Shown here one piece after another: positions 11,572 to 19,504 of a DNA stretch of 64,000 nt. The stretch lies in sequence record NC_048053.1; one strand, 5' to 3'. The position numbers were made by a program, and so were the translations under genes. Position 1 is the first letter of the stretch; each line of letters opens with the position of its first letter. A model generated the notes under the pieces. The model saw nothing but the letters and a program-made list of their open reading frames with translations. It was not told where the DNA came from and made no database searches.

Positions 11572-11892
11572 ATGATTAGCGACATTACAGAGAATTTTAT
11601 TTATTGTTCACCTAGCGGAATTCCATTTCGCGTAAAAGAGATTGCTGCACACGGACAAGATTGTTCTCTGGCTATGGTTGTCTATGAGAATTTGGAACCT
11701 ACGAAAGATTATCCGGCATTTAAAACGTGGGTTCTTCCTGAATCTTTGTTTGTGAAACAGTTCTCTGAATATTCAGAAGGAAAGTTTTATGAACGAAACA
11801 ACATTGTTGCATCATCTAAAATCGCGCCATTGGAATGCGGAGAAGCATTTCGGTTGGCTGTCTCCAAATCAACTGACTGTTCCTTTGTATAG
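11572..11892 (+). CDS. DUF1653-like small SH3-fold protein
   Basis: FRVKEIAAHGQD..MVVYENL..WVLPESLFVKQF pattern. Confidence 0.6.
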   Translation: MISDITENFIYCSPSGIPFRVKEIAAHGQDCSLAMVVYENLEPTKDYPAFKTWVLPESLFVKQFSEYSEGKFYERNNIVASSKIAPLECGEAFRLAVSKSTDCSFV

Positions 11893-12299
11893 TTTTGATC
11901 GCGCATTGCGCGGGGTTCAGGTATACACTCCGGAAGCGCCGAAGAAAGATCCTAATCCGAAAGCGTGTCGTTATTTTACGCGAGTATTTGGTGGCAAACA
12001 GTTGGTGTGGGGAACGGAAATTATACCTGAACGGGACGACCGTATTTTTAACTGAATCAGTTTTCAAAGCGTGCGCTCTCCATAGCGTTGGAGCTAACGC
12101 GTGGTCTGTTCTTGGAAGCAAAGTGAATGTGCAATTGAAACAACAATTGAGTTTGCTTGGTCTACGCTTTGTTTGTGTTGGAGATAACGATAAGGCAGGA
12201 GAAGAATTTGCAGAAACTTTTCTGCATGGATGCACGTCTAACGATCTTGATGAGCTATCTCAAGATAAGCTGCGTGAATTGGTTAACAAATTCAGGTGA
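11789..12299 (+). pseudogene. Primase-like TOPRIM protein split by a +1 frameshift near 12030-12050
   Basis: 5' frame 11789-12055 joins TOPRIM motifs VFLTES and VGDNDKAG in frame 11895-12299; joined length ~169 aa. Confidence 0.7.
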
Positions 12300-12491: not shown

Positions 12492-13334
12492 ATGATTCAC
12501 GCGAGTCCAATTAAGTTTCAAGGGAACAAGCGCCAGCTAATGCCTGTTATTACTAGCCTTCTCCCTACTGGCTGCACACGGATGATTGATGCTTTTGGTG
12601 GTAGCGGTGTTGTTACTGCCAACGTGCAATTTAAATCGCGTCTGTATATTGAAAAACATCCTCAAGTTTTCGAAATCGTTAAGCATATTTCGCAGAGCGA
12701 TCCGAAAGCAACTGTTCGCCGTATTAAAAACATGGTGAAGAAATTCGCGCTTACTAATAGCAACGAAAGACAGTTTGAGGATTTCAAAAAGTACGCGAAT
12801 TCTAAAAACGATCCGCTGTTGTTTTATATCCTGCATCGTCACGCACATAGTAACCTTCTGCGTTTCAATCTCTCTGGCGAATTCAACACGCCATTTGGTG
12901 ATCGTGGTCTGCTTGGTCGAATGGATGAAGTCGAACAGGAGATCACTAAGTTCTGTGAGCTTATGGAAGGCGTGCAATTCTACTGCGGCAGTTACACGCG
13001 CGTAGTAGAAGAACTCAATCGCAGAAAGCAACTCAATGCGAAAACGTTTTTCTATTTCGATCCTCCTTATCTGGCCTCTGGCGCGAACACATACGCCAAA
13101 TGGACAGAAGACGACGAACAACGCTTGCTGAACAATCTGGCAGGGCTTTCAAAACGTAACGTTCGTTGGATGTTGAGTAACGTTACTGAACATCGGCATT
13201 TCAAAAACCAGTTCCTGATTAAATGGTTGAAGAAAAATGATGTAAAGGTACATAAGATCGACAAGCATTATTGTTTGGCGAACTCTCATCGCGATTCTCA
13301 TGGAACAAAAGAGATTATCGTGACCAACTATTAG
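12492..13334 (+). CDS. dam: DNA adenine methyltransferase (T4 Dam/D12 class)
   Basis: SPIKFQGNK, DAFGGSG SAM motif, RFNLSGEFNTPFG, catalytic DPPY. Confidence 0.93.
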   Translation: MIHASPIKFQGNKRQLMPVITSLLPTGCTRMIDAFGGSGVVTANVQFKSRLYIEKHPQVFEIVKHISQSDPKATVRRIKNMVKKFALTNSNERQFEDFKKYANSKNDPLLFYILHRHAHSNLLRFNLSGEFNTPFGDRGLLGRMDEVEQEITKFCELMEGVQFYCGSYTRVVEELNRRKQLNAKTFFYFDPPYLASGANTYAKWTEDDEQRLLNNLAGLSKRNVRWMLSNVTEHRHFKNQFLIKWLKKNDVKVHKIDKHYCLANSHRDSHGTKEIIVTNY

Positions 13335-13498: not shown

Positions 13499-14218
13499 AT
13501 GGAAAACTTCGCTGCTATCTCTGCCAAAAGTTTAGGTAGATTCGAGGCATACGCAAAGTGGGAATCGAAATTTGATCACGGTTCTAGTTTTGATCTCTTT
13601 GTGAAACAGTCCGAAGCTGTGCGCAAGGCTCTTTATCTCAAAGAGGAAGATCTCGATCTGCTTGGCGACGTTTGGCGAACTTATCACGTTGGTATTCCGT
13701 CTGCGAATCATCAAGTCAACATTTTGATCGCAGCGTTGAATCTCGATCCTATTCAGGAAGTTTTGCTTCGCTACAAAAACATTTACGATCAGAAAACGAT
13801 TGTTGCTACCTACGAATTAGGTGTAAACATCTACGAAGAGACTGTTCTTATTCAGACTGCTCGCCGACTGATTGATAGTAATATCGCCATGTACTGCGCA
13901 GAAGTGTTGACAAAAGATTACGATGACCGCGATTCAAATCGCTGTCTTGCTTTTCCCGGTATGCCAAATCTGCATCCACTTCTGGAAATCGCTTTCGAAT
14001 ATACAGCAAAATATTTGCTTGACGGCGATACGTTGGTCGGCAGCATGATGACTCGTTTTAACGATCAGCCTATTATTTATCGCTACCCGATGGATATGTC
14101 AGAAGACGGTAACGTTGTTATTCTGACAGGCAGTGGATCTATTTATTTGTTAGGCAAACCGCCGCGTACAGATACTGCGGCAAATCATTTGAAAGTTGTA
14201 AGGAACAACGATGACTGA
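13499..14218 (+). CDS. Hypothetical protein
   Basis: 239 aa ORF, AAGGA SD. Confidence 0.75.
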   Translation: MENFAAISAKSLGRFEAYAKWESKFDHGSSFDLFVKQSEAVRKALYLKEEDLDLLGDVWRTYHVGIPSANHQVNILIAALNLDPIQEVLLRYKNIYDQKTIVATYELGVNIYEETVLIQTARRLIDSNIAMYCAEVLTKDYDDRDSNRCLAFPGMPNLHPLLEIAFEYTAKYLLDGDTLVGSMMTRFNDQPIIYRYPMDMSEDGNVVILTGSGSIYLLGKPPRTDTAANHLKVVRNNDD

Positions 14219-14444
14219 TGTACTGAACGAGAAAGGCGAAGTATTAGGCCACGCCGACGATCCGGGCTTGCCGGGAACTCCCGGCGTTGCAGGCATTCCT
14301 GATAAACAGGAAGACCCGTTCGCCGATGAAAACTTTTTTGACAATCTGGAAATCGACGAAGATCGTATTCTGGAAATGCAGAAAGGTGGCGGTGAAATTC
14401 TGGAACCGTCCAATAAATGCGAAAGCGGTGCATGTGAAATCTAA
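14211..14444 (+). CDS. Small acidic protein ending in an NrdA-type redox tail CESGACEI
   Basis: 77 aa, AAGGA SD, overlap with upstream stop; C-terminal CxxxxC. Confidence 0.8.
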   Translation: MTDVLNEKGEVLGHADDPGLPGTPGVAGIPDKQEDPFADENFFDNLEIDEDRILEMQKGGGEILEPSNKCESGACEI

Positions 14445-14445
14445 T

Positions 14446-14478
14446 CTGTAAATAAGGGGTAAGGAAACTTACCCTTTT
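14446..14478 (+). promoter_or_regulatory. CTGTAAATA motif (candidate phage promoter) fused to hairpin/terminator
   Basis: CTGTAAATA then GGGTAAG-GAAA-CTTACCC-TTTT. Confidence 0.65.
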
Positions 14479-14517
14479 CTATTTGTGGTAGCTTTTTAAC
14501 TTTAATGGGGAAACCAT

Positions 14518-15096: not shown

Positions 15097-15461
15097 TGAA
15101 AGAAATTCTTATCTCTCGCGAAAGAAGATCTGAAATGTTCAAACAACTTCTGGCACTTCAAACGCAATACTTCCTTGCGCGTAAATGGAAGTGGCGCGAA
15201 GGTTGGTGCGCTGGAGAGGAATGTGATGAATGGACGGATGAATCAGGCTCTATTATGTGGGCGTCTGTTCAGGATTATATTTTCTCACCAGCGAACATTA
15301 TAAACTTCATGGAGAAGCATGAAATCTCTATTGAGCATAACGGAAAAGAAAGTTACACGGCAATAACTAATACCGGGATTGTCGGTCACGGCATTTGTCA
15401 CCGTAGCGCCGTATTGACTGCAATGATAAATCACTACAGGAAAGAAAATGGAATCAATTAA
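15096..15461 (+). CDS. Hypothetical protein (weak NinX/DUF2591-like C-half)
   Basis: TAATG coupling; IINFMEKHEISI..SAVLTAMI pattern. Confidence 0.65.
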   Translation: MKEILISRERRSEMFKQLLALQTQYFLARKWKWREGWCAGEECDEWTDESGSIMWASVQDYIFSPANIINFMEKHEISIEHNGKESYTAITNTGIVGHGICHRSAVLTAMINHYRKENGIN

Positions 15462-15942
15462 TCTTCCGATCAAAGATCGTGTTCAGCATTATCCGTTCCT
15501 CGCGGCAGCGTTTAATTTGGCGAACATTTCTAAAGCGCGTCGTCGAGCGTGTGGCGCTGTTCTAGTGCGCAACATTAACGGCATTCCCACAATCATTAGC
15601 AGTGGCGTTAATGGCACTGAACCGAAAGAAGAAAATCTTTGTGAGACTCATGATCTCACTTTATCTTTACCGGGTACGGTTCACGCAGAAATTAATTGTG
15701 TGTCTGTTTTACGTCCTTCTTTGTTGGATACGGACATTCTCTATATCACGGATTCGCCGTGTGAATTCTGTCTGGAGTTTCTGAAAACAACAAATATCCG
15801 CACGGTTGTTTTCGCTCGTTGTTATCGCATTACAGAGCATATGGAAAAAGCGGAAGGCTTTCGCTTCATTCACATTCCGGAACAGGCAGTAATTGATTAT
15901 ATGACCAGTTCCGTGAACCGTATGGCGCAGGTTATTTCGTAA
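15448..15942 (+). CDS. cd: dCMP deaminase
   Basis: RRACGAVLV, SGVNG, HAE and SPCEFC zinc motifs. Confidence 0.92.
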   Translation: MESINLPIKDRVQHYPFLAAAFNLANISKARRRACGAVLVRNINGIPTIISSGVNGTEPKEENLCETHDLTLSLPGTVHAEINCVSVLRPSLLDTDILYITDSPCEFCLEFLKTTNIRTVVFARCYRITEHMEKAEGFRFIHIPEQAVIDYMTSSVNRMAQVIS

Positions 15943-16406: not shown

Positions 16407-17282
16407 ATGGACTATTATTTTTCACTCGAAGAACTAAGAACGTGGGCGCGAATCTGTCTGATCGTGATTGTGTTTGGCTCTCTCTTTTACTCAGCTTACA
16501 GCAACTATATCCGCAATAAGTATGAGAAGATCGCGCGTCGTATGTTTAATGTCGGCGAACTTGCGGCAGGGCAAGTGTGGCAGCACTACCGCAACAAACG
16601 TTTCTACACAATTCAAGTTGTGAGTAATGTAATTGCCAATGGCAAAGAGTGGCCTCTCACTATCGTATATATGACAGCGAAAGGTTATGCTGTTTATAGT
16701 CGTCCGGCACATGAATTTATTCGCAAGTTTAAATTGGTGGATGAAGAATCTAACGCACGCGAAACTCCGACGCAGAATCTTCTGGCGTTAATGTCATATG
16801 TGACTGGAAGAGTATCGTTGCCTGAACCGGGATCGGAGTGGATTCGCGAATACGGAGTGCCCACAGGAAAAATTAACGCATTAGGCCATCTGGAAATGCG
16901 TTTAATGAAAGAAAAGATTGTGGTCGATACCGTAACTAACCTCAATCAACCGTGTCCGTATGTGAACTATACAGATCAAAACGGTTCGAAGAAAACCATT
17001 ACTCTGCATCACTTCCGGCAAAGTTATGTAAAAGAACAAGTGATTACTGATCGTGTATCACATTGCATTCTAAGCAATCAAAATGTGGAAGCGTTGAAAG
17101 AAGCCACGCTTCGCGATGGTGATCGTGTAACTGTAAATCAGGTAGTAGATGACGAATTTATTGTTGTTGACTACTGCGGTATCTCTGCGAAACTCGAATT
17201 TAATTCCACTAAAGGTTTTTACGTGGGCGCAGAATATGTTATTAACGAAGGCTGTCTGACGATAGGGAAAAATGATGAGTAA
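16407..17282 (+). CDS. Membrane-anchored protein with DUF1653-like domain(s)
   Basis: N-terminal TM ICLIVIVFGSLFYSAY; GQVWQHYRNKRFY..IVY..YSRPAHEF. Confidence 0.7.
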   Translation: MDYYFSLEELRTWARICLIVIVFGSLFYSAYSNYIRNKYEKIARRMFNVGELAAGQVWQHYRNKRFYTIQVVSNVIANGKEWPLTIVYMTAKGYAVYSRPAHEFIRKFKLVDEESNARETPTQNLLALMSYVTGRVSLPEPGSEWIREYGVPTGKINALGHLEMRLMKEKIVVDTVTNLNQPCPYVNYTDQNGSKKTITLHHFRQSYVKEQVITDRVSHCILSNQNVEALKEATLRDGDRVTVNQVVDDEFIVVDYCGISAKLEFNSTKGFYVGAEYVINEGCLTIGKNDE

Positions 17283-18027
17283 TTATCCGCAACTGGATCT
17301 CACCAAAGAGCGTGATTTCGAAATGTATGCCTATGACAATTACGATTGTCTTTATATGGGGCGCGTCGATGCAATAAAAGAAGAAGGGCGTCCTGTAAGC
17401 GATCCTAAGCGTACAGAAGATCAATGGCGTACAATTCCCGGTTGCGTTATTCAACTCGCAAATACAGCAATGGCTTTTCCTGCGCCGCTTTCGAAAAAAG
17501 CAAATTGGGTTGCTGCGGTAGATGAAAGCTGCTGGTTCATGCGTGGTGAGACAAACATCAATACGCTCAATTCCAAAATTTGGGATGAGTGGGCTGATGA
17601 GTCTGGTGAGTGTGGCCCGATTTATGGTGAAATGTGGCGGCGTTGGCCTGACCTCAAAGCATTCTTCGATTACACGCAACCTACTGGCGTGTGTCCGTCC
17701 CCTGATGTTCTTCGCATACGCAAAGAAATTCTGCGTATGCGTGCTGCTGGATACAAAGAAACTTTAATGAACGATGGTCGCATTCTGTTCGAAGGTGAAA
17801 TCGATCAGTTGTTGGAAGCATTAATTGCAATCAAAGAGCGTTCACGCTCGCGTCGTATTCGTGTTCAGGCGTTCAATCCTTCTTATTTGCATATGCAGGG
17901 ATTACCGCCGTGCCATACTGGTTTTGAATTTAACGTGTTGCCTTCGACTCTGTATGAGCAAACGATCATGCGTGCGGCACACGGCGAAGCATTCGAAGAA
18001 ACTTTGCACGTCAGCGTGTTCCTGCGT
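17272..18027 (+). CDS. thyA: Thymidylate synthase, exon 1
   Basis: IWDEW, GPIYG, SRRI, catalytic PPCH, ends ...FLR. Confidence 0.92.
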
Positions 18028-19153
18028 TCACTACATTGAGCGCCATTGGGTAGTAATGCCCTTTGCAAACTCCATTAAAACGGGAACCTCTCGAAAGAGA
18101 CAATCCGTTGCTAAATTTCCAAAGAATGATAATTTCAAACGGTAGACCTAGAAACCTATCGGAGAAAATATCATGACTGCGTATGTGTACAGGCTTGTCC
18201 ATAGACCTACTGGAAAGTTTTATTTGGGATCGACTGACGATATAGATTACAGGAAATACCAACACCTGAACAATCTTGAGAAAGGCCGTCATCCTAATTG
18301 CAGACTTCAAAAACTATTCGATAAAAAGAATGGCAAGAATTTTGAGTGGGAAGTGTTCCCTGTCAAAAACAGAAAGGCAGCATTTGAGCACGAACAAAAG
18401 CTGTTGGCAAAATACCACGACAACAAACTTATGTTGAATATTGGAATGCACACTGTTGGCGGAGATAACCTTACTCGAAATCCACGTAGGAAAGAAATCA
18501 TTGAGAAGATCGGACGCGGTGCAAAAGGCGTTTGGGATAATCTTAGTGATGAACAATATCAGGAACGTGTCGCCTTAGTTCAAGGTGAAAACAATCCGAT
18601 GTATGGAAAGACTCACACGAAAAAGGTTAAGAAAAAACTTAGCGAATTCCACAAAGGGAATACTTATGCTCTAGGATGCAAGCGCTCCGAAGAGACTAAG
18701 AAAAAGTTAAGTGAGAGTGCATCGAAACGAACCGGAAAGAAAAATGCTTTCTACGGCAAGAATCATTCCGAAGAGGCCAAAGCGAGAATGCGCGAGGCAG
18801 CACTAGCGCGAGATCCTTTAGATAAAGCTCAAAGAAAAGATATCAGTGTGGATGGAAAAGTTTTTATTTCTCTTAACGAGGCTTCGCGTCAGTTAGGAAT
18901 TCCAGCACCAACTTTGAGTTACCGATGCAAAAGTAAAAACCCTAAATACGCAAATGTTTTCTATTTGGAATAAATGCCCAACGACTATCGAAAGCACGAT
19001 TAATTTCGGAAGCGAGTAGAGTAGGATGCAAGCTAATGGCATTCGAAATGTGGAGAGTCCTCGAAAGAGGATTGTGATATAGTCTGATCTGCATAGTGAT
19101 ATGCAGCGGTCGAAAGACGGCGAGGAAAGTTGCGCTTCCTTGTGAACATAATG
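18028..19153 (+). mobile_element. Group I self-splicing intron (1126 nt, IA2-like)
   Basis: P1 GCGU|UCA-cuacau-UGAGCGC with U.G at the splice site; Q CAATCCGTTGC; P7 GACTA/TAGTC; P3 CTCCA/TGGAG; terminal G 19153; splicing restores LRSSDTLLGLPFN. Confidence 0.93.
18173..18973 (+). CDS. Intron-encoded GIY-YIG homing endonuclease, I-BmoI/I-TevI-like
   Basis: YVYRL..FYLGST, conserved R/E/N, NUMOD3-type repeats (GENNPMYGKTH, KRSEETKKKLS, FYGKNHSEE), C-terminal EASRQL HTH. Confidence 0.93.
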   Translation: MTAYVYRLVHRPTGKFYLGSTDDIDYRKYQHLNNLEKGRHPNCRLQKLFDKKNGKNFEWEVFPVKNRKAAFEHEQKLLAKYHDNKLMLNIGMHTVGGDNLTRNPRRKEIIEKIGRGAKGVWDNLSDEQYQERVALVQGENNPMYGKTHTKKVKKKLSEFHKGNTYALGCKRSEETKKKLSESASKRTGKKNAFYGKNHSEEAKARMREAALARDPLDKAQRKDISVDGKVFISLNEASRQLGIPAPTLSYRCKSKNPKYANVFYLE

Positions 19154-19504
19154 TCAAGTGACACCCTATTAGGCTTGCCGTTTAATGTTATCGGCTACTG
19201 TTCTATCTTCCATTTGTTCGCAAAATATTGCGGCCTGAATATCGGTAGCTTTACGATTGACAGCACCAATACGCATGTTTATGAACATCACTGGACGGCG
19301 CTTGATAAGCAACGTGAACAATTCGAAGAACTGGTGGCAGAAGTTCGTAGCACTGGTAATCCGATGCAGTATCCGATCATGCGAATCGATCCGAAAATTT
19401 TTGCACTGGAACCGAAAGAACTTCTCGATTCAATCAGCGTAGAAATGTTCAATCTGGAAGGTTACAATCCGAAAGGTAAGATTACCGGGCGCGTAACCAA
19501 ATAA
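19154..19504 (+). CDS. thyA: Thymidylate synthase, exon 2
   Basis: SSDTLLGLPFN, THVYEHH; spliced CDS 368 aa. Confidence 0.92.
   Translation, partial: SSDTLLGLPFNVIGYCSIFHLFAKYCGLNIGSFTIDSTNTHVYEHHWTALDKQREQFEELVAEVRSTGNPMQYPIMRIDPKIFALEPKELLDSISVEMFNLEGYNPKGKITGRVTK

Follow-up and report, generated by a model that had tools for sequence, protein, structure and literature searches.

Jumbo phages carry stand-alone copies of the NrdA redox tail, candidate trans-acting mimics directed at host ribonucleotide reductase

Why would a phage in which no ribonucleotide reductase (RNR) is found encode a free copy of the tail through which that enzyme is re-reduced? The question arises at JA29_019, the gene for an acidic 77-residue protein in the first 64,000 nucleotides (bases 1-64000, hereafter the window) of Dickeya phage vB_DsoM_JA29 (MH460461.1), which its record describes as a jumbo phage of the genus Salmondvirus with a genome of 253,323 bp and the host Dickeya solani. 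The record lists JA29_019 as a hypothetical protein. A first-pass annotation of the window had placed an open reading frame (ORF) at 14211-14444, quoted its sequence down to the ending NKCESGACEI-stop and proposed that it is a detached redox arm acting in trans; position and sequence agree exactly with the DNA and with the ORF list. We find that the functional unit of JA29_019 is its last ~46 residues, which are acidic and largely disordered by prediction and close with a stretch that copies the NrdA tail of gammaproteobacterial class Ia RNR. The explanation we favour, at a probability of roughly one half, is that JA29_019 mimics the NrdA redox tail in trans and engages the re-reduction half-cycle of host NrdA, preferably as an electron shuttle. 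The gene and its parts are laid out as follows.

14200-14204, + strand: AAGGA, a Shine-Dalgarno-like site 6 nt 5' of the ATG, read from the sequence and kept in phage JA11
14211-14444, + strand: JA29_019, 77-residue acidic protein, ATG start, stop codon included (ORF list and record annotation)
14211-14303, + strand: variable N-terminal part, residues 1-31 (JA29/JA11 alignment)
14304-14441, + strand: conserved 46-residue module, residues 32-77, with an acidic/hydrophobic motif, a short helix (RILEMQ), GGGE and the tail (family alignment)
14394-14441, + strand: NrdA-tail-like end, residues 62-77 (EILEPSNKCESGACEI) (BLASTP and family profile)
14454-14487, + strand: intrinsic-terminator-like 10-bp hairpin and T-run, 3' of JA29_019 (terminator scan)

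JA29_019 contains 20 Asp/Glu against 5 Lys/Arg and ends in ...LEPSNKCESGACEI-stop; residues 19-30 read GLPGTPGVAGIP and residues 39-52 read DENFFDNLEIDEDR. The protein had no match in Pfam, PHROGs, NCBIfam or PADLOC, and we found no curated family that assigns the peptide a function. Comparison with the sister phage JA11 divides the protein in two. In the N-terminal third 9 residues, of 31 and 38, are the same in the two phages, which also differ there by in-frame indels, whereas the last 46 codons comprise 25 that are identical, 12 with synonymous-only differences and 9 with amino-acid changes. The hairpin and T-run at 14454-14477, 3' of the gene, are identical in JA11, and the homologue in phage Miami is likewise followed by an annotated terminator. 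Given the synonymous-rich module, the drifting N-terminus and the unchanged terminator, JA29_019 is a real gene with selection on its C-terminal part: the module is under purifying selection while the N-terminus drifts. Residues 1-31 have no counterpart in homologues of 44-64 residues. Four collagen-like Gly-X-Y triplets occupy 14265-14300 (residues 19-30), and peptides of the Salmondvirus type carry four to five of them.

We then compared the end of the module with NrdA itself, taking as reference the E. coli nrdA of an annotated nrdA-nrdB locus (L009:1242-3527), whose product ends in ...LVPSIQDDGCESGACKI-stop. BLASTP aligned JA29_019 with E. coli NrdA residues 754-761, with 7 of the 8 terminal residues identical and both stretches at the extreme C-terminus, which bears out the likeness that the first-pass annotation had drawn. 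The geometry of the cysteines is also that of E. coli NrdA: Cys70 and Cys75 of 77 (codons 14418-14420 and 14433-14435) have four residues between them, and the second stands two from the end. An acidic run before the cysteines is common to the peptides and the NrdA tails. At the nucleotide level, when the last 85 nt were compared by blastn with 5,426 complete E. coli genomes, the single match was non-significant (E=9) and fell on the nrdA 3' end. CESGACKI closes 80/80 NrdAs of Enterobacteriaceae and Erwiniaceae, close relatives of E. coli NrdA, and it is exactly the last eight residues of the 54-residue homologue in Erwinia phage Alexandra. A profile of the last 46 residues of the peptide family matched E. 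coli NrdA at 751-761 only, end to end (E=5e-5 in a search of one sequence). Against 23 NrdAs the family profile aligned with the last 11-18 residues at 9-23 bits, reaching 16-18 terminal residues in NrdAs other than that of E. coli; an example is EVVEsADSDCESGACKI, which scores 22 bits in an NrdA 88% identical to the E. coli protein. The same profile had no match to NrdB. Since the protein has 77 residues, no Pfam domain and no nrdA in its genome, JA29_019 reads as a copy of the tail and not as an NrdA. The match to the tail exceeds chance: all 36 members of the family retain it, and the last 46 codons are rich in synonymous change while the N-terminus has diverged.

The peptide belongs to a rare family. 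Searches with tblastn located it in ~61 of 50,697 phage records, all of them jumbo phages of 212-294 kb whose hosts include Erwinia, Dickeya, Klebsiella, Serratia, Yersinia, Salmonella and relatives, and 33 clusters emerged when 1.84 billion representative proteins were scanned in full with HMMER. Stand-alone homologues have 44-94 residues (49 in PCH45, 52 in fHe-Yen9-02 and 46 in Miami). Alexandra and fHe-Yen9-02 are syntenic with JA29 and therefore do not count as independent lineages. Strict conservation of both cysteines, put forward in the first-pass annotation as a check, is what the alignment returned: two C-terminal cysteines, the last of them two residues from the end, are present in 36/36 members. 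The final residue is Ile in 35 and Leu in one, four residues separate the cysteines in 30 members and two or three in the other six, and the penultimate position is Lys in 23/36. The module consensus runs from an acidic/hydrophobic motif through a short helix and GGGEV-x-E-(A/P)-S-(N/D)-x to CE(G/S)GACKI. The proposed detached NrdA redox tail is thus upheld, with the cysteine pair and its distance from the end found in every homologue and the likeness extended to 11-18 residues. JA29_019 itself had no match at E<=0.01 to the profile of phrog_10239, a phage protein family to which no function is assigned; its relatives do match this profile of 47 positions (P0022 at 6.6e-9, P0026 and P0018 at ~1e-3), and JA29_019 is tied to it via the family alignment with those relatives and not by a match of its own.

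The module also ends larger proteins. This is the case in nine clusters: in eight of them it follows either of two N-terminal domains that are unrelated to each other, and in the ninth (P0031) a third, unique N-terminal part; one such fusion sits, in a related contig, at the locus of the 49-residue gene of PCH45. In AlphaFold2 (AF2) models of both recurrent fused types the helix is predicted and the tail is disordered, with a predicted local distance difference test score (pLDDT) below 50 for the tail. The fused domains were modelled at pLDDT 62 (P0012 type) and 72.5 (P0009 type). Neither model had a match in the PDB at E<0.001, so the fused domains give no functional clue, and Pfam also returned no match for them.

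Given that the peptide carries only the tail, we asked whether its phages encode the remainder of the enzyme. The JA29 record annotates no RNR, tblastn searches with E. coli NrdA and NrdB found no match across 250 kb of the genome, and Pfam searches of 20 large hypothetical JA29 ORFs found no RNR domain. The earlier statement that no RNR adjoins the ORF is therefore correct, and it extends to the rest of the JA29 genome, where none was found. The gene nrdA is absent from 4/4 tail-carrying genomes examined whole. Serratia phage PCH45, a nucleus-forming phage according to the literature, has no nrdA; Erwinia phage PhiEaH1, whose annotation includes a nuclear shell protein and the tubulin PhuZ, has neither nrdA nor nrdB; and the same holds for the N4-like coliphage ST4. 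PCH45 does possess an orphan nrdB (L095:24783-25889), whose product has 80% identity to E. coli NrdB and an intact C-terminal docking end. Host-like nrdB genes resembling it are also present in many further jumbo phages and in coliphages of 52 kb. In a review, the gene for the RNR beta subunit is listed with those that over half of jumbo phage genomes conserve (PMC13282480), and phages with nrdB only were noted earlier (PMC3653736).

We also searched for the tail in viral sequences at large. The pattern C-E-x-G-[AG]-C-K-I-stop occurs at 73 places in 2.9 million IMG/VR contigs, all 73 with a true stop, against ~3 expected by our own estimate from the information content of the pattern. Genuine NrdAs account for 23 of these, 21 of which have nrdB in the available flanks, and no other protein of the 73 has a known function. 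The other 50 are non-RNR ORFs of 40-360 residues, and neither nrdA nor nrdB was found in their available flanks. Sorted by eye without formal clustering, they form at least a dozen sequence groups that have in common an acidic make-up and an acidic-CE(G/S)GACKI end, often with a motif of the D-D-F/L-D-F/L-D type near the N-terminus. Given that the same tail occurs on 50 non-RNR ORFs of unrelated groups, the JA29_019 family is one instance of a wider phenomenon in which the tail is set on many scaffolds. The first-pass annotation, which had seen a single ORF, was right that the tail is real; the ORF represents one family among many tail-sharing phage proteins. One of the tail-bearing ORFs is zinc-ribbon-like, and the L111-type tail family had no match among cultured phages. 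Members of the Pfam N4 gp49/Sf6 gp66 family (PF13876) in N4-like phages end in ...CEGGGCKI, the tail-bearing ones being found in ST4 (L175:25065-25445, - strand) and in L141, L152, L162, L166, L168 and L172; most of the 945 phage records with a PF13876 domain match the query only in part.

Some distant tail families also present an N-terminal DFDDFDL that resembles EFDDFDL, the end of phage NrdB that docks on the alpha subunit. When scored with a matrix of NrdB ends, 10 of 64 tail-bearing proteins reached p<0.05 against shuffled sequences. We considered and rejected the acidic N-terminal motif of JA29_019 as such a copy: it scored z=-1.0, most of its family behaved likewise, and the family profile matched no NrdB.

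How might a free tail act in a cell that already holds a complete enzyme? In class I RNR the cysteine pair of the alpha tail reduces the active-site disulfide after each turnover, and thioredoxin (Trx) or glutaredoxin (Grx) then reduces the tail (PMC11903788, PMC5704485); the tail, itself reduced by thioredoxin, and nucleotides compete for the active-site pocket (PMC11903788). Given that no RNR is found in the phage, the re-reduction half-cycle of host NrdA is the likeliest target of a free tail, and since the carrier phages lack an alpha subunit, the partner would be host NrdA, its reductants, or both. From this we infer each binding and redox step, as well as the direction of the effect. Host Trx and Grx may take the peptide as a substrate, the peptide may enter the active-site pocket of NrdA in place of the tail of NrdA itself, or both may occur. 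In the direction we prefer, JA29_019 would be an auxiliary dithiol shuttle that passes electrons to host NrdA and supports the output of deoxynucleoside diphosphates (dNDPs) for a 253-kb genome. We prefer the shuttle because both cysteines are strictly kept, because the distance between them varies in the way seen in natural RNR tails, and because in PCH45 an orphan nrdB accompanies the peptide. Action in trans, as first proposed, is thus best read as action on host NrdA, on Trx/Grx or on both; the accompanying version in which the peptide re-reduces a tail-less phage RNR has to be given up, with JA29 lacking an RNR by annotation, tblastn and Pfam and with PCH45, PhiEaH1 and ST4 lacking nrdA. 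The broader proposition, that many phage lineages, among them jumbo, nucleus-forming, N4-like and uncultured ones, plug tail-only proteins into host class Ia RNR and thereby reprogram deoxynucleotide supply, is one we put forward tentatively and would sooner doubt than assert; under it, some tail-only families may additionally carry a motif resembling the docking end of the RNR beta subunit. If it held, such proteins would form a new class of auxiliary metabolic gene, based on short-motif mimicry of the mobile arm of an enzyme, and a possible side benefit would be evasion of defences that sense the rise in deoxynucleoside triphosphates (dNTPs) caused by phage NrdAB.

Several observations weigh against the host-directed mimic. 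Because NrdA has a tail of its own in cis, the gain from a free one is not obvious. The stretch shared with NrdA is short (8-18 residues), and most family members have CEGGACKI where the 80 enterobacterial NrdAs have CESGACKI, so that the copy is not exact in every case; those 80 NrdAs include none from Dickeya, the genus of the JA29 host. Sequence searches of the PDB, whether by the peptide or by the family profile, did not return NrdA, an absence that we attribute to the shared stretch being too short for the filters of HMMER, and gave weak irrelevant matches (a scaffold protein, AcrIIA13 and collagen), the collagen ones being explained by the Gly-X-Y triplets of the variable N-terminal part. 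The whole genomes examined are those of only four tail carriers (JA29, PCH45, PhiEaH1 and ST4), and for PCH45, ST4 and PhiEaH1 class II and class III RNRs are absent by annotation only. Finally, we found no neighbouring gene conserved next to the peptide across phages, and hence no partner that would point to a pathway.

The alternative that survives best is that the free tail is an inhibitor or decoy, which would block the NrdA pocket or titrate Trx/Grx and so throttle host dNTP synthesis; the gain would be host shut-off, or dNTP pools held below the level that defences sense. Tail identity and conservation fit this idea as well as they fit the shuttle, and the competition of alpha tail and nucleotides for one pocket (PMC11903788) also speaks for it. 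A work cited in PMC5704485 has Sml1 blocking regeneration via the R1 C-terminus, and phage NrdAB, by driving up dNTPs, triggers the defences DRT2, DRT4 and DRT9 (bioRxiv 10.64898/2026.10.27.754916). The NrdB-end-like motif of some distant tail families would, moreover, compete with the beta subunit. Yeast Sml1, which competes with the R1 C-terminal domain, would be a parallel. Nevertheless, the carrier phages have no nrdA and would thus have to draw on host NrdA for dNDPs made de novo, the added nrdB of PCH45 points to boosting and not blocking, a pure blocker would need no cysteine pair in every member, and the likeness to the NrdB end is missing in JA29 (z=-1.0). We regard inhibition as unlikely, but as a serious rival.

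Less probable again is that the cysteine pair has nothing to do with RNR and instead binds metal, belongs to some other thioredoxin-linked switch or is a signal for docking on a different partner, the likeness to NrdA being convergent or the relic of a captured nrdA 3' end. The shortness of the shared stretch and the failure of HMMER searches of the PDB to return NrdA are consistent with this, as are the many unrelated scaffolds of unknown function that bear the tail, among them the N4 gp49 family and the zinc-ribbon-like ORF, and the lack of a conserved RNR-related neighbour. Set against these are the 73 pattern matches where ~3 were expected, with NrdAs as the sole proteins of known function among them, the absence of nrdA from 4/4 genomes, and an extreme C-terminal position, an acidic run before the cysteines and a terminal Lys-Ile that are all as in NrdA.

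A split enzyme, in which the peptide would be the missing tail of a tail-less phage RNR in the manner of NrdJa plus NrdJb, is highly improbable. It has precedents in the class II redox domain that Pseudomonas aeruginosa encodes separately (PMC5704485) and in phage RNR genes, which often come in pieces (PMC3653736). It fails for JA29, however, because no RNR gene was found there by annotation, by tblastn or by Pfam on 20 large ORFs; PCH45, PhiEaH1 and ST4 lack nrdA, and none of the 50 non-RNR tail ORFs of IMG/VR (0/50) has nrdA or nrdB in its available flanks. That JA29_019 is not functional, whether as an ORF that arose by chance or as a piece of an nrdA 3' end undergoing decay, is scarcely credible: the ORF is short, of low complexity and without family annotation, but it has a Shine-Dalgarno site, a conserved terminator and a module rich in synonymous substitutions, and its tail is intact in homologues of several distinct jumbo-phage groups.

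Returning to the host-directed mimic, how does it compare with known systems? Its closest likeness is the class Ia NrdA tail itself (Cys754/Cys759 in E. coli), with which the phage peptide shares CESGAC-x-I at the extreme C-terminus, acidic residues before it, the same spacing and predicted flexibility; the phage version is not attached to the RNR barrel (an ATP cone and a ten-stranded barrel) and stands alone or on unrelated small domains. NrdJb, from the split class II RNR NrdJa+b, is a precedent for an electron-delivering C-terminal part with a gene of its own (PMC5704485). It is a folded zinc finger with more cysteines, is encoded with its catalytic partner and has no likeness to the class I tail (PMC5704485), whereas JA29_019 has two cysteines and predicted disorder, and no RNR to partner it is found in its phage. 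Yeast regulators of the Sml1 type are small and largely unstructured and act on the large subunit at the step in which its C-terminal tail regenerates the active site, and JA29_019 is similar in size and predicted disorder; Sml1, however, is a cellular inhibitor without a cysteine-pair tail, and no search linked it to the peptide by sequence. Phages with an orphan nrdB or a partial RNR set supply one class Ia component and leave the rest to the host (PMC3653736; PCH45), yet what they supply are whole subunits, as opposed to a 10-20-residue appendage of alpha. A Grx-NrdB fusion of Facklamia ignava is another rearranged chain of electron delivery to RNR (PMC6187632), with the reductant there fused to the beta subunit in one organism and not a free viral tail.

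Our literature searches found no description of stand-alone RNR-alpha tails in phages, in agreement with the earlier remark that no such system is described. RNR sets the supply of dNTPs and is a classic point of phage takeover, for which the known strategies use whole subunits. A free-standing redox arm, if this is what JA29_019 encodes, would be a far smaller means of acting on the host enzyme. It would also offer natural trans-acting tails for studying the poorly understood re-reduction half-cycle of RNR, and could explain what the tiny acidic ORFs that recur in phages do. The matter is relevant, too, to the recent finding that changes in dNTPs caused by phages are sensed by several defence systems. 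Collectively, the presence of tail-only proteins in many unrelated phages suggests an undescribed way to tap or throttle the host supply of DNA precursors.

The surroundings of JA29_019 in the window were also examined. The earlier description of a neighbourhood with dam, dCMP deaminase and thyA is supported by both Pfam and the record annotation, and the flanking features are these.

12492-13334, + strand: Dam-type adenine methyltransferase (Pfam PF02086, E=3e-27)
13499-14218, + strand: JA29_018, 239 residues, its stop overlapping the start of JA29_019 by 8 nt
15448-15942, + strand: dCMP deaminase (Pfam PF00383, E=5e-11)
17272-19504, + strand: thyA in two pieces, 17272-18039 and 19151-19504 (Pfam PF00303, record annotation)

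JA29_018 had no match in Pfam, PHROG or NCBIfam, and no homologue of it was found beside the peptide gene in Alexandra, fHe-Yen9-02, PCH45, Miami or one metagenomic relative. We considered whether JA29_019 could be the precursor of a ribosomally made, modified peptide and rejected the idea: its neighbours carry no radical SAM, cyclase or protease Pfam domain, and none of them is conserved across phages.

Between the two thyA pieces lies an ORF of the GIY-YIG/NUMOD3/I-TevI homing-endonuclease type (18173-18973; PF01541, PF07460, PF20987), in a layout that resembles an intron-interrupted thymidylate synthase gene; an Rfam search of 17800-19400 for a group I intron returned no model at the gathering score. 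Upstream, at 11789-12299 of the window, the annotated 'putative DNA primase' is an 88-residue fragment with an overlapping 134-residue ORF in another frame, and Erwinia phage Alexandra likewise has two short adjacent coding sequences named 'DNA primase'. Outside the window, two large hypothetical JA29 proteins (L002:28413-30188 and L003:10443-12365) contain a KMPT-N domain (PF20294).

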